A DNA stretch of 63,916 bases, the filler included, from Octopus bimaculoides (Eukaryota), in assembly GCF_001194135.2 (NCBI RefSeq). It is 6 parts of 5 records of this genome, joined end to end, with 100 filler letters (N's around TTAATTAATTAA, not from the genome) between each part and the next. Parts side by side here need not be neighbours in the genome. Positions count along the whole stretch, not along the records: positions 39,820 to 46,095 come from NC_068991.1; 5 more parts are not named here. The stretch is one strand, 5' to 3'. How positions within the stretch are numbered: the first letter of the stretch is position 1; the number at the start of each line of letters is the position of its first letter. Below are positions 39,820 to 46,195 of this stretch, piece by piece. The notes beneath the pieces were generated by a model that saw only the letters and a program-made list of their open reading frames with translations, did no database searches and was not told the origin of the DNA. A program made the translations under genes and the position numbers.

Positions 39820-40965
39820 CACCCATTTGCCTCCCTTGGTCATCTGCTCGTAAACCTGTGGCTTTGCAGTGGCTCTTCTTACAGATTGAGAAGGCTTATA
39901 CCCACATACTTGGTATTGTGTTTCAGGTTCACCTGTCGGCTCTGTTTCAGGTTCACCTGTCGGTTCTGTTTCAGGTTTACTTGTCGGTTCTGTTTCAGGG
40001 TTTGATTTTGAAACACAGCAACACTTGTCGTGGCTGAAAATATATCCATTTTGACAAGCTATCAGCTTCCATGAACTGCCTCTCAGTTCGTAATAATAAC
40101 GTTCATCTCTAAATGTTCTTCGTTGTATATATGAAGGTACATGCCGACAAAATTTTTGAGGGAGTTCAGGTTCGACCTTTGGTGTAACCTCCGATTCGCT
40201 TGTTGGTTTCACATAAGTACAATCACAGATAGCACTGCTGAATGTGCCGCCGGCTGCGCAAGTTTTCTTCTCCCATGCGTTATTGCTATTGATCTGAAAA
40301 TAATACTGTGGATTCGAGTCGCTTTTACGGAAATATCCATACTTGGGGTGTTTACATATTTTGGTATTTTCAGGTTCAGGCGTTGTAACAATGACACCGA
40401 TAGTGCAATAACATTTAGTTAGACTGAAGGTAGCACCATTATAGCACTTTATTCTTTCCCATGTGTTGCTGTTTGTTAGCTGTTGAAAATAATTCACATC
40501 AGTATCTCGTTTACGTGTTCTGGTATTAGCGCCTGGATATTGACATGTTTCATGGCTATTTTCAATGCAACGGCAGTGTGTCGGACTGAAAACTAATCCA
40601 CTTTTACAAGTATTCGTTCCCCATTTTCTCGTTTTTACACGTTCTTGATAATAGCTATCTTTTGGATCAGCTCTTCTGATGTAAGTCTTTGAGCCTCGAA
40701 ATATGCAAGTATTTGGTGTATTTTGACGCGTGTGTATCATGAGTAGTGTTGGAATACATGCACAATAGCGGTCACTGAAAACTCTGCCAAACATGCAACT
40801 ACGTCGAATCCAAATATAGTCCCAAATTGGTTCATAATAGATCGATTTACTTCGTCCAGGCACTAGAGCACAAGTTAAATTCGAGCTTGTTTGAATTTGT
40901 TTGCCATCAATCTCTTCAAGCAAAAAAATAACAGCAACAGTGACTAAATATACTACAGATTTCAT
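39820..40965 (-). CDS. Secreted protein with tandem Cys-rich, CBM14/peritrophin-A-like (putative chitin-binding) modules; 3' end lost in assembly gap
   Basis: 382 uninterrupted codons from ATG at 40965 to the N-gap. Signal peptide MKSVVYLVTVAVIFLLEEIDG. Five complete modules (C32-C70, C87-C133, C141-C187, C204-C249, C273-C317) share W-x4-C-x2-G-x2-F-S-x3-C-x-C, and a sixth starts at C354. Pro/Thr/Glu-rich linkers; one sequon (N29-L-T). The gene call is strong, the function is inferred. Confidence 0.85.
39919..39999 (-). repeat. 24-nt in-frame coding minisatellite (PETEPTSK/PETEPTGE x3.4)
   Basis: Near-identical tgtttcaggttcacctgtcggttc units on the + strand. Confidence 0.9.
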
Positions 40966-41072
40966 ATTGGATGTGTTGTTTTGCTATGCATAGAGAGACA
41001 AATTGAAATACAAGAGCAGTCGTCAACTCGGTAAGCAATCCGGTAAGTATTAAGCGGCGCACATGACGTAAG

Positions 41073-41080
41073 TTTATATA
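41073..41080 (-). promoter_or_regulatory. Candidate TATA box (TATATAAA) of the Cys-rich gene
   Basis: TATATAAA on the minus strand about 110 nt upstream of the ATG, implying a TSS near 41045-41050 and a 5' UTR of about 80 nt. A CRE-like TGACGTAA lies adjacent at 41064-41071. Confidence 0.5.
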
Positions 41081-41904
41081 GTACTCATACGTCTTGAATT
41101 CACACTACGACACAAAAATAAAATGGGTGGGGGATACTAGAAGCAGAATGCGGTGAAATAAAAAATATTCTTAATTATTCATTGTATATGTGTGGGAAAC
41201 AGGAAGCCTATTCAGACGGTCTTCACTGAATCCATGAATATATAATAGGCTTCACTTTTTAGTTAAGAATACTATCAAAACTTCACAATGAATTAATAAT
41301 AGTGAATAGAAATGTCTTCCTATCTTTACTCCATATAAAAAGCATTTTGTAACAATAAAGCCTTTTTTATGGGAGTAAATATAACTGATAGATGAGGAAA
41401 ACGAAGTGGGTGGGAAAAAAGTATTTCTTAGTTTGATTGTTTGTTTTGTTTTTTTACATTTTGATAATACATGGATGATTTATTTTCTTTTTTTACTGTA
41501 ACTCGCAGAATGTCGAACAAATATATACTTTTTTAATGTAAAATAAAAGTCATATTTTCAGAAATATTTATTGCTCCTGGTGCAAATTTTTCTTGTGCTT
41601 GCGTAACCACACTGAAACTCACACAAATATTTTTAAATATACGCACACACACACACACGCGTGTACATACGCACACACTCAAAACCATGCGCACACACAT
41701 ATACACATTCATACATACGAAAGAATACATTTGTGAAGAAACAAAATGTGTGCCCTTTATTACATACACACAGAATCAAAAGGAAATTGTCAAAGTAGAA
41801 ATACAACCCTTTCTTTGGGTTGTTTCCTCTTTTTTTCTTAAAAAAGATGTTATCATCTGTAATATTACTTTGACATATCAGAGACATTAATATTTTTTCA
41901 CTGT

Positions 41905-42770
41905 ACGGTGGCGAGCTGGCAGAAACGTTAGCACGTTAGCGGTATTTCGTCTGTCTTTACATTGTGAGTTCAAATTCCACCGAGGTCGACTTTGCCTTTC
42001 ATCCGTATCGGAGTCGATAAATTAAGTACCAGTTACGTACTGGGGGCGATCTAATTGACTGGCTCCCTCCCCAATAACTTCAGGCCTTGTGCCTAGAGTA
42101 GAAACGAATATATTTTCATTGTAAGGTGGCGAGCTGGCAGAAACGTTAGCACGTCTGTCATTACGTTCAAATTCCGCCGAGGTCGACTTTGCCTTTCATC
42201 CTTTCGGGGTCGATAAATTAAGTACCAATTGCATATTTGGGTCGATCTAATCGCCTGGGACCCTCCCCCAAAATTTCGGGCCTTGTGCCTAGAGTAGAAA
42301 AGAATATTTTTTCACTGTATTAAGCGAAACGCCAGGAAAAATGCTTAACGGCATTTCGTTCGTCTTTACGTTACGCGTTCAAACTCCGCCGAAGTCATCT
42401 TTGCCTTCCAACTTTTCGGGGTCGATAAAATAAATACCGGTTGAGCACTGGGGTCGAAGTTGCTGACCTTAGACCAAAATCTGAAATCAATAGTTTTTCA
42501 ATAAACCATGGTCTCATGACAAGTTGTTACTGTTAATGATACAGCTATAAAAGCCATCTTGTTGCAACATGCATATAAAGATGTCTAGTTAACAAGGTGT
42601 GCAACTTAGGCGTTGGGCTGACAGAATGGTTAGTGTGTCGAACCAAGATGCCTTCAGAATTTCGTTACGGCTTTTTACAACTTGGGTTTAAACCCCCATC
42701 GGAGTCAACTTTTGTTTCATCCTTCTTGGGTTCATAAATTAAGTAGCTGTCAAGTGCTGGGTCGATTTAA
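41905..42770 (+). mobile_element. Cluster of four head-to-tail SINE B copies
   Basis: Heads or cores at about 41905, 42122, 42320 and 42610. Confidence 0.8.
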
Positions 42771-43402
42771 TATTTCTATAAAACACTCTAGCTGTGATGG
42801 AGTTGTAAAAGTAAACAAATATCCGCTATATTATGGCATTTTCAATTTAGCATAATGCACAATAAAGATAGAGCTTATGGAAATCCACTTAAAAGCATTT
42901 TTTTAATCATTTACTTGTTTCAGTCATTGGACTGCAACCATGCTAGGGTACCATCTAGTAGGGTTTTAGTCGAACAAATTGCTCCCAGTACTTTTTGTTT
43001 TTTAAAGTCCAGTATTTATTCTATCGTTCTCTTCTGCCGAACCGGAGCATAAACAAACCAACACCGGTTATCAAGCGGTGTAGTGGGAATAAACACTGAC
43101 GAGACACGCACACACATATGTATAAACGAGGACTCCCTCACAGTTTCCGTATAATTCACTTACAAGGCATTGATCACCCCTGGGCTATCGTAACTCAAAA
43201 TCACCTGGTTGCAAAGCTAGCTTCTCAACCACAGTGCCCCTATATATATATATATATATATATTTTACGGAGATGTACTTGCATAGCAAGTGACCTGATC
43301 TGAGATTGTGTGCTGAAACATAAACAATTGCAGCGTGGAAGGTGTTTATAAGTCATTTAAAAACACAAAAACAGTTAGATTCACTTCAGCATTTAATTTT
43401 AA

Positions 43403-43453
43403 TTTGTCAAAATATTTTTGTCACTTTGAGACCGCGACCTGTTCACTGAAAAA
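43403..43453 (-). ncRNA. Decayed minimal hammerhead ribozyme with G3-C8 core variant
   Basis: UUUUUCA-GUGAACA-G-GUCGC-GGUCUCAAA-GUGAC-AAAA-A-UA-UUU-UGACAAA. Stem I pairs 6 of 7, stem II 5 of 5, stem III is palindromic AAUAUU. G12 is replaced by A. Confidence 0.5.
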
Positions 43454-44022
43454 ATTCTGTACTGCATCTGAGAAAGTAATAGTTAGTTCATGATATGCAT
43501 GCATGCATACATACATACATNNNNNNNNNNNNNNNNNNNNNNNNNNNNNNNNNNNNNNNNNNNNNNNNNNNNNNNNNNNNNNNNNNNNNNNNNNNNNNNN
43601 NNNNNNNNNNNNNNNNNNNNCGGGAGAGTTCCAACCAGGGGTGGATAACACCTTATAGGAAAGCCCTATAGTATAGCTATAACAATGAAAAACAATTCTA
43701 TACTTCTGTTTTGAGGTTTCTGTGTGTCAAATTTGCTTGAATCTTTTTTCCATGGCCCCAGCCTCACATCTAAGACTATACTGGTCGAAACATTTTATCG
43801 TGATATTACGTAGTAAAGTCATTCACATAAGGGACACACAGAAGGAATAGGCACATTAAAAAAAAAAGGCACATTGAATAGAGTATTTGTGAATACAATA
43901 AAGCTGAATAAAAGATGAGATTGTCAAGCCTTACTTGAATATCTTTCATCATAAGTCTACTTGATTAAGATCATAATAGGTTGTATTAAAGAACTGTATG
44001 TGTTTATATTTGCCCCGCCGGT

Positions 44023-44404
44023 GGAGGCGCAATGGCCCAGTGGTTAGGACAGCGGACTCGCGATCATAGGATCGCGGTTTCGATTCCCAGACCGGGCGTT
44101 GTCAGTGTTTATTGAGCGAAAACACCTAAAGCTCCACGAGGCTCCGGCAGGGGATGGTGGCGAACCCTGCTGTACTCTTTCACCACAACTTTCTCTCACT
44201 CTTACTTCCTGTTTCTGTTGTGCCTGTAATTCAAAGGGTCAGCCTTGTCACACTGTGTCACGCTGAATATCCCTGAGAACTACGTTAAGGGTACACGTGT
44301 CTGCGGAGTGCTCAGCCACTTGCACGTTAATTTCACGAGCAGGCTGTTCCGTTGATCGGATCAACTGGAACCCTCGGCGTCGTAAGCGACGGAGTGCCAA
44401 CAAT
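44023..44404 (+). mobile_element. SINE family D, full length; other copies at 23278-23626 (-) and 27955-28127 (+, 3' part)
   Basis: ggaggcgcaatggcccagtggttagg head, gtttcgattcccagacc B box, tail cgacggagtgccaacaa. Confidence 0.85.
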
Positions 44405-46195
44405 GTTGCCCCACCATACTTTAAAAAAAAACAAGTCCTAGAGTCGATTTGTTTGACTAAACCCTTCAAGGTGGTGACCCATATGAAACAATTAAAGGAT
44501 AAACTCTAAAGCATTGCATAATGTAGTCCCTGCTACGCAAAAACAAGGATGGTTATAAATGGAATATCATTGATCATAAATTGATGCGATCAGAGATGAG
44601 CTGGCAATAAAAACAGCTACAAAACCAGCAGGAACGTCCACAAAACAACCTAAATTCCTATATTATAATCACGATAAATTAGAACCAGTTTCTTCGCCCC
44701 CCACTAAATCTAGAATAAATGTAGAATAAATATCAGCCATAACTAGTGCAGGTACGTGGCCAAGTGTTACACTAACGATCGCGAGATAGGGGTTTCGATT
44801 CCCAGACTAGTGGTGTGTTCTGTTCTTGACCAAAAACACTTCATTTCACGTTGCTCCAGTCCACTTAGCTGTAAATGAGTAACACGTATATTCCATGAAA
44901 ACTTGGTAACCGCCCCTATGAGTCCTAAAACTCGAGACGGTACTTACTTGCTTATAGAATATCTACTTACCATTGCAATAATTCTGGAACAAGATTTCTG
45001 ATCTTTCAAGGAGACATGAAAAAAAAAATACTTGGAATGTCTGCATAATATTCTTTCAACATTATACCTTCCACCCATCTGCTAAATCCAGTTAGGCGGC
45101 CTCTAAAAAAGGATTGAAAATTCTCACGATTATTTTGATCATGAAGGACAACCATGTCATGTTCCATTCAGAATCACAGCCAACTACATGCATTGGTTCC
45201 ATTTGTCAACCCACCTTTTGTTTTAACCGAGTAGTCAAAGATTTCTCTCTGCGTAGTCGCTCTACATGCTGGAAACAGCAGCCAAATATCCATCCATCAG
45301 ATCACACCTATCATCTTAAAAAAAAAAAGAAGATACCATATAATGTAAGCTATGTTATACGATGCTAAACAAAAAATTGGATGGATGGATGGTCATCGTC
45401 TGAATAGTTTTGACCACAAGTCTAACGTGGGGGGATAAACGATGGGCCTGGGTAGGGAGAGGATATCATTGATAAAAGTCGTGAATGGTGACGAAAAAAA
45501 ATTGACGAAACTAGCTACTTGATTGATTGACTGAACGCTTAATTAAACGATCGATTAGTTGATTGGTCGACTAATAATAATGTTTTGTAATTTTGACACA
45601 AGGGAAGCTATTTTGTGGGAAGAAGAGTAAAGTTGTTTATATTGACTCCAGTATTTGACTGGTACTTATTTTATCGATCCCGATAAGACGAAAAGAATTC
45701 CATCTCAGAATGTGAAGATCAGTAAGAAATACTGCTAAGCAACTTTTCCGATGTGCTAATGATTTTAGCACGTCACCGCTAATAATGGTTTCAAATTTTG
45801 ACACAAGACCAGCAATTTCGGTGTAAGTCGATTACATTAACCCTTGTCCTCAACTGGTACTTATTTTATCGACCCCGAAAGGATGAGATACAAAGTAGTC
45901 CTCGGTGGAATTTGAACTCAGAACGGACGAAATGCCGTTAAGCATTTTGCCCAGCGTGCTAACAATTCTGCCAACTCTCTGCCTTTCATTACCGCTAATA
46001 ATAACATTTTCTTCTATAGACTCAGGGTCTGAAATTTTGGGTGTGGGGGTAAGTCGATTAGATCGACTCCAGTGCTTGACTAATACTTATTGTATNNNNN
46101 NNNNNNNNNNNNNNNNNNNNNNNNNNNNNNNNNNNNNNNTTAATTAATTAANNNNNNNNNNNNNNNNNNNNNNNNNNNNNNNNNNNNNNNNNNNN

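Follow-up and report, generated by a model that had tools for sequence, protein, structure and literature searches.

The octopus protein and its tandem modules

What kind of protein is encoded by a long, uninterrupted reading frame of Octopus bimaculoides in which cysteines return in a regular pattern, and to which known family do its repeated modules belong? The window examined here is the whole stretch of 63,916 nucleotides, joined from parts of the genome assembly GCF_001194135.2, and the frame lies on the minus strand of its genomic piece 39820-46095 (from NC_068991.1), the stretch that we analysed around it. This open reading frame (ORF) starts with an ATG at 40965, continues for 382 stop-free codons and is still open at 39820, where the edge of the piece cuts it. 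Its product is best explained as a secreted, mucin-like protein in which modules of 40-47 residues, very probably derived from CBM14, stand in tandem. We do not consider it a fundamentally new kind of protein: the modules are predicted to share the fold of the chitin-binding domains found in chitinases and peritrophins, which would make it a divergent relative within a well-known type of matrix protein.

A reading of the DNA made without database searches (the sequence-only reading) had described a signal peptide followed by tandem modules with P/T/E-rich linkers, and this layout was confirmed. The start codon opens an N-terminal segment, MKSVVYLVTVAVIFLLEEIDG (residues 1-21, 40903-40965), with a 14-residue hydrophobic core of mean Kyte-Doolittle hydropathy 2.8, the sole hydrophobic stretch in the protein; on this hydropathy heuristic the N-terminus looks like a cleavable signal peptide. 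Compared with the O. sinensis orthologue, the segment carries a single residue change (V8 to L). Five complete modules of 39-47 residues and the start of a sixth follow, all on the minus strand, and all cysteines of the protein fall inside them. Module 1 (residues 32-70, 40756-40872) has 39 residues and a short N-terminal half, CALVPGRSKSIYYEPIWDYIWIRRSCMFGRVFSDRYCAC, and was delimited from the module alignment and the Cys pattern, as were module 3 (residues 141-187, 40405-40545), module 4 (residues 204-249, 40219-40356) and module 5 (residues 273-317, 40015-40149). Module 2 (residues 87-133, 40567-40707) is the most CBM14-like by a partial Pfam match, AlphaFold2, Foldseek and BLASTP, and is the one that we modelled. 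Module 5 ends in C-C-C (residues 315-317, 40015-40023) and therefore has five Cys. After it comes an acidic P/T/E-rich linker, (PETEPTG[EK])n, at 39907-40014, with an isoelectric point (pI) of 4.1 and S, T or P at 17 of its 36 residues; its DNA at 39919-39999 is a tandem repeat with a period of 24 bp, 3.4 copies and 94% matches (Tandem Repeats Finder). Module 6 (residues 354-382, 39820-39906), recognised by reading the ORF and by its Cys pattern, is cut by the piece edge directly after the invariant Trp.

The modules share the core motif W-x4-C-x2-G-x2-F-S-x3-C-x-C with fixed spacing in 5/5 complete copies, and the two strings that the sequence-only reading had quoted as examples, WGTNTCKSGLVFSPTHCRC and WEKKTCAAGGTFSSAICDC, are present in the protein. 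Against these five occurrences, not one of 20,000 composition-preserving shuffles contained even a single core motif. When the nine RefSeq modules of the full-length protein are aligned, six columns never vary (C, W, C, F, C and C), and Arg and Tyr are nearly invariant among modules. The conserved Trp and Arg noticed before correspond to an invariant Trp and an R-[RK] patch in our module alignments. The modules proved as diverged and as basic as had been stated: identity to module 1 is just 21-33% for the others, and their pI ranges from 8.8 to 10.0. P, T, E and S are abundant in the linkers, most of which are acidic. Many modules close with C-C-C rather than C-x-C, giving five Cys, as in module 5 and in most O. 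vulgaris modules; the odd Cys would be either an unpaired thiol or part of a vicinal disulfide.

The sole match of this protein among 5.8 billion clustered proteins was XP_014780495.1 of Octopus bimaculoides, named 'uncharacterized protein LOC106876448 isoform X5', with 641 residues and nine modules. The first 337 residues are identical. From residue 338 (39820-40014) our sequence has fewer PETEPTG units than isoform X5, with E replacing the RefSeq K, and its sixth module (CGYKPSQSVRRATAKPQVYEQMTKGGKWV) matches no RefSeq module identically. We attribute this difference to repeat collapse, allelic length variation or differences among isoforms, as it is limited to the tandem-repeat linker and recently duplicated modules, where such variation is expected. 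In RefSeq the gene has no fewer than 5 isoforms in O. bimaculoides; for O. sinensis the count is at least 13. The O. sinensis orthologue, LOC115217256 isoform X13, has 869 residues and 11 modules, and the O. vulgaris orthologue, to which UniProt automatically gives the name 'Titin', has 1,445-1,521 residues and 20 modules; module number thus differs among species, isoforms and assemblies, from 9 to 20 or more. Over the first 320 residues O. bimaculoides and O. sinensis are 84% identical, with 21/21 Cys kept and the same module order. These comparisons indicate that LOC106876448 is a real, conserved gene, at least the first 382 codons of which lie within a single exon, and the ORF is best explained as its promoter-proximal, intron-free beginning.

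Predicted fold and sequence relationship to CBM14

We ran AlphaFold2 on module 2 (residues 86-135) with an alignment of 92 module sequences. Run without an alignment on the full 641-residue protein, AlphaFold gave a predicted local distance difference test (pLDDT) score of 32.8, which was unusable, and the single-module model was used instead. This model has a pLDDT of 88.9 and consists of five main strands plus a two-residue N-terminal bridge, arranged as in CBM14, where two antiparallel sheets, one of three strands and one of two, form a distorted beta-sandwich. In a Foldseek search of the PDB, CBM14 structures made up 8 of the 12 best matches, ranks 1-3 included, with template-modelling (TM) scores of 0.55-0.71 for the best matches when normalised to the query. 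The top match was human CHIT1 (5hbf; probability 1.00, TM 0.71, 26% identity). The mite allergen Der p 23 (4zce) matched over its whole length with a TM score of 0.71 to the query and 0.74 to the target, a root-mean-square deviation (rmsd) of 1.8 Å and 12% identity, and EHEP of the sea hare Aplysia (8in6) matched with a probability of 0.97 and an rmsd of 1.4 Å over 39 columns. Further CBM14 matches were the nuclear magnetic resonance structure of the CHIT1 CBM14 domain (6so0), Avr4 (4z4a) and Blo t 12 (2mfk). Among predicted viral structures (BFVD), most of the 50 matches listed were baculovirus or entomopoxvirus ChtBD2, peritrophin-A, Ac150 or VP91 proteins. The predicted fold is therefore not one unrelated to CBM14, and we consider the module very probably a derivative of it.

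Sequence profiles point the same way through intermediates. An hhalign comparison of 23 octopus modules with 69 four-Cys modules of other molluscs gave a probability of 98% (E 2.7e-13), and either the mollusc modules or all 92 modules together, compared with eight canonical CBM14 domains, gave 81-83% (E ~1e-5). With the AlphaFold2 and Foldseek results, this chain supports the earlier proposal of a divergent CBM14/ChtBD2-like module with fewer Cys. Three hhalign runs returned an identical register, in which Y-x-E lies on the canonical Y-x-C3 strand and C-x2-G-x2-F on C4-P-x-G-L-x-F. Seven proteins composed solely of four-Cys modules (P0005, P0006, P0009, P0012, P0019, P0028 and P0032) pass the gathering score of Pfam CBM_14, and they do so through the same C-terminal half of the model that the octopus protein matches below threshold, in three partial stretches at profile positions 26-53; the one in the region of module 2 spans residues 115-141. 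Taken singly, 6/69 mollusc modules match CBM_14 at E <= 0.01, and the nine octopus modules include one with CBM_14 at E 0.11 and another with Baculo_VP91_N at E 0.009, a family that also appears among the sub-threshold matches of the full-length protein. By BLASTP, module 2 shares 8/15 identical residues with the chitin-binding domain (ChBD) of CHIT1.

Profile searches of PDB sequences returned noise (WW domains, a spike fragment, and two CBM14-containing proteins at E ~0.9). The WW-domain matches, at E 2-6, come from the R-x-D-x3-YY-x6-W segment (residues 96-116 and equivalents) and were taken as a chance resemblance. A WW domain is a three-stranded sheet that lacks disulfides and has two conserved Trp at a distance of 20-22 residues; we rejected this reading because the octopus module conserves a single Trp, contains four Cys and drew no WW domains in the fold search. 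The Pfam matches Trypan_PARP, NESP55 and PT are due to the low-complexity PETEPTG linker and not to homology.

Related modules in other molluscs

Our exhaustive profile search, run by hmmsearch with the octopus profile over 1.84 billion representatives, also recovered a shorter related module, C-x(18-36)-C-P-x-G-T-x-[FY]-x4-C-x-C, at E 1e-60 to 1e-4, most copies of which show Y-x-[QE]-[FL]...G-W ahead of the second Cys. By regular expressions and alignments, the framework common to the octopus and the other mollusc modules is C-x(18-36)-C-x2-G-x2-[FY]-x4-C-x-C. The four-Cys modules come from Acanthosepion (Sepia) pharaonis, Ostrea edulis, Crassostrea/Magallana, Haliotis species and Bradybaena similaris, from a Mytilus trossulus protein named 'mucin-5AC-like' and from a Pinctada imbricata protein that UniProt calls 'Chitin-binding type-2 domain-containing protein'. 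Nine further sequences (P0010, P0014, P0016, P0018, P0020, P0023, P0024, P0030 and P0031) were set aside as they have partial C-x2-G-x2-[FW]-x4-C-x-C tails or low-complexity matches and not full modules.

In Haliotis and Bradybaena the four-Cys module directly follows a canonical six-Cys CBM14 domain in Pif/BMSP-like proteins. In two Haliotis proteins (P0011 and P0022) and one of Bradybaena (P0029), two or three such modules separate the canonical CBM14 from a laminin-G-like tail, in which C-terminal motifs (GL[KR]IPRFS ... F.G.IDE) match the partial laminin-G motifs reported for Pif/BMSP (PMC11291548). The Haliotis cracherodii protein additionally has VWA and TSP1 domains; the TSP1 repeats of the Haliotis proteins are absent from the usual description of Pif/BMSP. 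A 'CB-like domain' and sub-threshold 'CBM_14L1/L2' domains had previously been described in Pif/BMSPs (PMC11291548), and we infer that they correspond to our module; for the 'CB-like' domain of Pif97, this equivalence is suggested by the position of the module in P0022 and P0029, between canonical CBM14 and laminin-G-like tail.

Since it occurs in cuttlefish, bivalves and gastropods, the module type appears to be mollusc-wide, and the suggestion in the sequence-only reading that it is lineage-specific does not hold for the type as a whole. What appears restricted to Octopus, judging by the sequences recovered, is the long, basic, Trp-invariant subfamily with PETEPTG linkers.

We also noted the arrangement of these genes in the cuttlefish S. 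pharaonis. Contig CAHIKZ030002386.1 has two four-Cys-module genes (384 and 274 residues) in tandem ~1 kb apart (locus L001, 10001-13386), and the same 270-kb contig encodes a third such protein of 729 residues. Their linkers are rich in Ser/Asp/Glu (SSSSEEDS) and resemble acidic shell-matrix proteins. It is a possibility that these proteins are components of the cuttlebone matrix.

Rearranged cysteines and comparison with known systems

Canonical CBM14 domains have six Cys, paired C1-C3, C2-C6 and C4-C5 (PMC10619976), and those of CHIT1 form the disulfides C420-C440, C450-C463 and C460-C462 (PMC4844120), which agrees with the six Cys that the sequence-only reading had given for canonical domains; the CHIT1 C-terminus it quoted, CPTGLVFSNSCKCC, is also correct when checked against PDB entries 6so0 and 5hbf. 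The octopus module has four Cys, or five with the C-C-C ending. By alignment and spacing it keeps C1, C4 and the position of C5, and with them the C4-x2-G-x2-F...C5 hairpin of canonical domains; C2, C3 and C6 are lost, and one new Cys, two positions ahead of the last, creates the C-terminal C-x-C. In the hhalign register, canonical C2 and C3 stand opposite non-Cys residues and C6 has no counterpart. The separation from the second to the last Cys is 12 residues, the same as from C450 to C463. C1 has lost its partner and so probably pairs with one Cys of the C-x-C; most likely the second Cys then pairs with the other, making two disulfides instead of three.

The best structural match, the ChBD of CHIT1, shares with the octopus module the segment C-x2-G-L-V-F-S ... 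C-x-C and a positively charged surface (PMC4844120); in length and in the order of strands the two are also similar. The ChBD differs in having six Cys, including C440, of which the octopus module has no equivalent, in carrying a Trp after the last Cys, a place where the octopus module has none, its own invariant Trp preceding the second Cys by four residues, in lacking the R-[RK] patch, and in having C-K-C-C with the C460-C462 bond where octopus modules end in C-C-C. Unlike CHIT1, the octopus modules are not joined to a GH18 catalytic domain, and their Pfam score is sub-threshold. Der p 23 (4ZCE), a mite peritrophin-like allergen, likewise builds a CBM14-like fold on two disulfides and not three, but it is a single domain in which both disulfides are canonical, whereas the octopus module has lost the partner of its first Cys.

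The other mollusc four-Cys modules share the Cys framework and the occurrence in tandem arrays within secreted proteins with low-complexity linkers. The octopus modules exceed them by 4-8 residues in the N-terminal half, often end in C-C-C and are basic, whereas the others are neutral or acidic, and the octopus linkers are PETEPTG repeats in place of the Ser/Asp/Glu-rich linkers of cuttlefish. Unlike the Pif/BMSP-like relatives, the octopus proteins are without VWA, TSP1, canonical CBM14 or laminin-G parts in Pfam; Pfam found no VWA, canonical CBM14 or LamG in the protein encoded by the ORF, in the full-length O. bimaculoides protein (P0001) or in O. vulgaris P0002, so these do not qualify as Pif/BMSP.

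In architecture, the protein resembles insect peritrophic-matrix proteins and intestinal mucins, with a signal peptide (here by hydropathy), tandem domains of the peritrophin-A (CBM14) type and mucin-like P/T-rich spacers; AeIMUC1 was described as a signal peptide and peritrophin-A domains with a mucin-like spacer (PMC10619976). The insect proteins have canonical six-Cys CBM14 domains, whereas the octopus protein is molluscan and chitin is its putative ligand. EHEP of Aplysia kurodai (8IN3/8IN6) is also a secreted mollusc protein made solely of CBM14-fold domains, but these are three canonical six-Cys domains packed in a triangle, and it binds phlorotannin and not chitin (PMC10619976). Our literature searches on octopus chitin-binding, sucker or beak proteins turned up nothing specific; DgCBP beak proteins, which came up there solely in a paper on the Rebers-Riddiford chitin-binding consensus and not on CBM14, were set aside.

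Putative promoter and flanking sequence

Upstream of the ATG, on the same minus strand, TATATAAA (41073-41080) is followed by TTACGTCA (41064-41071), which resembles a cyclic AMP response element (CRE). Together these elements (41064-41080, 115 nt upstream of the ATG), read off the sequence, form a putative core promoter, and it is plausible that they act as such without a 5' intron.

The 5 kb upstream of the gene is repeat-rich, and we saw no other convincing gene there. Units of ~200 bp resembling short interspersed nuclear elements (SINEs) occur as three direct tandem copies at 41880-42470, with a partial copy at 42600-42760, and as three inverted copies, 75-90% alike, at 45575-46095. They probably represent the abundant octopus SINE. 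Two tRNA-like stretches at 44018-44100 and 44745-44810 (GGCCCAGTGGTTAGGA...GGTTTCGATTCCCAGAC) are probably the heads of tRNA-derived SINEs; across the flank, these stretches included, ARAGORN called no tRNA and Rfam gave nothing at E <= 0.01. An assembly gap of 100 N (43522-43620) is flanked by a (CATA)n microsatellite, and there are also an (AT)12 run (43243-43266) and a CA-rich microsatellite (41634-41704). In the latter, a match to mir-297 scored 37.7 against a threshold of 90 bits and was taken as chance.

Weighing the alternatives

Several results weigh against a CBM14-derived module with a role in chitin matrices, and we consider them together with the explanations that they would favour. 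The gathering cut-off of Pfam CBM_14 (PF01607) is 22.1 bits and the protein encoded by the ORF reached 9.4 bits (E 1.5), so formal membership of that family, which the sequence-only reading had left to a profile search, was not obtained; nor does Pfam list CBM_14 for full-length P0001 or P0002. Aligned alone with canonical CBM14, the octopus modules gave an hhalign probability of 35% (E 4e-4). No Foldseek E-value was below 0.001 in either the PDB or BFVD, the range being 0.05-2, and the AlphaFold2 model depends on an alignment of 92 sequences that was compiled by regular expression. Together with the noise returned by the PDB sequence-profile searches, these points suit an unrelated small disulfide-rich beta domain that converged on the C-terminal hairpin of CBM14, its AlphaFold and Foldseek match then arising artificially from the very small size of the domain and an alignment made by hand. 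We regard such convergence as improbable. The Foldseek E-values are weak because the domain has just 50 residues, and the fold call therefore rests on the uniformity of the matches: dozens of independent CBM14/ChtBD2 structures top both Foldseek lists, with TM scores of ~0.6-0.76 and an rmsd of 1-3 Å over 40-47 of the 50 residues. Moreover, intermediate sequences pass the CBM_14 gathering score, the sub-threshold matches of the modules include CBM_14 and Baculo_VP91_N, and the alignment register is the same in the three separate hhalign runs. Literature searches on LOC106876448, XP_01478049* and LOC115217256 found no mention of them. It is also true that the piece is short, with its 100-N gap and its setting amid SINE-like repeats, and that the ORF departs from RefSeq isoform X5 after residue 337, in a repeat region. 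That the ORF is non-functional, whether as a pseudogene, as an expanded coding-like repeat or through an assembly artefact, is nevertheless the least probable explanation of all: the departure from RefSeq is confined to the tandem-repeat linker and recently duplicated modules, the 382 stop-free codons begin with an ATG and a putative signal peptide and have a TATA box upstream, and two other Octopus species keep every Cys and the module order.

Then there is the question of the ligand. CBM14-derived modules in a tandem array would bind chitin or a related polymer rich in N-acetylglucosamine at many points, as insect peritrophins and intestinal mucins do, and this multipoint binding would cross-link or coat the fibrils of a chitinous extracellular structure of the octopus. 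The acidic P/T/E-rich linkers, probably O-glycosylated, would carry the basic modules (pI ~9-10), and the odd Cys of C-C-C modules could give added covalent cross-links. On analogy with these proteins we lean, by a modest degree, towards such a chitin-matrix role through multivalent binding; its placement in beak, radula, sucker, gut, egg coat or saliva is a conjecture. Octopuses have several chitinous structures, and these need proteins of this sort. It is possible, though clearly less probable, that the modules keep a CBM14-like fold and have lost chitin binding, and that they bind acidic or sulfated polysaccharides, polyphenols or quinones, matrix proteins or microbial surfaces, the protein serving as an adhesive, a mucus or egg-coat component, or a precipitating or antimicrobial protein. 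CHIT1 needs Trp465, which follows its last Cys, for chitin binding (PMC4844120), and the octopus module has no counterpart of it, the final Cys being followed by I/T/V and a variable residue. Among the best structural matches, EHEP (the phlorotannin binder) and the two-disulfide Der p 23 have the CBM14 fold and do not bind chitin, and chitin-binding residues are not conserved across CBM14 members (PMC10619976). The unusually basic modules beside acidic linkers, and an invariant Trp and R-[RK] patch that are foreign to canonical CBM14, also suit a loss of chitin binding. On the other hand, the best-conserved segment of the module, C-x2-G-x2-F-S, is common to chitin-binding members including CHIT1, and relatives of the module are embedded in Pif/BMSP-like proteins. 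With these points in view, together with the chitinous structures of the animal, we keep the chitin-matrix role as the preferred reading. A bolder proposal, which we hold to be unlikely and below the loss of chitin binding in probability, is that octopods evolved a private, disulfide-rewired CBM14 subfamily with two disulfides, a new partner for the first Cys, an invariant Trp, a basic patch and, in many copies, an unpaired Cys (C-C-C), in which basic modules and acidic PETEPTG spacers form a self-associating, covalently cross-linking polyampholyte with a non-classical ligand specificity. If so, the protein would represent a new type of adhesive or matrix component, placed for instance in the egg coat, the gut lining or the cuticle shed by the suckers.

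Significance

Secreted tandem ChtBD2-like proteins with mucin-like linkers were known already, as was a Cys-reduced 'CB-like' module from work on mollusc Pif/BMSP, and the present gene opens no new mechanism, its architecture being that of peritrophins and mucins. What is new is the assignment of an unannotated Octopus gene family to the four-Cys module, with predicted structural support for the CBM14 fold, and the description of a likely disulfide rewiring and of odd-Cys variants. As a natural case, the module also illustrates how disulfides may be lost and replaced within a very small fold. Cephalopods have several chitin-based structures, and little has been catalogued of the proteins that organise their chitin. 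This gene family escapes current domain models entirely; RefSeq calls it 'uncharacterized' and UniProt calls one orthologue 'Titin'. The link to the 'CB-like' modules of cuttlefish, bivalves and gastropods provides a handle for annotating putative chitin-matrix proteins across the molluscs.

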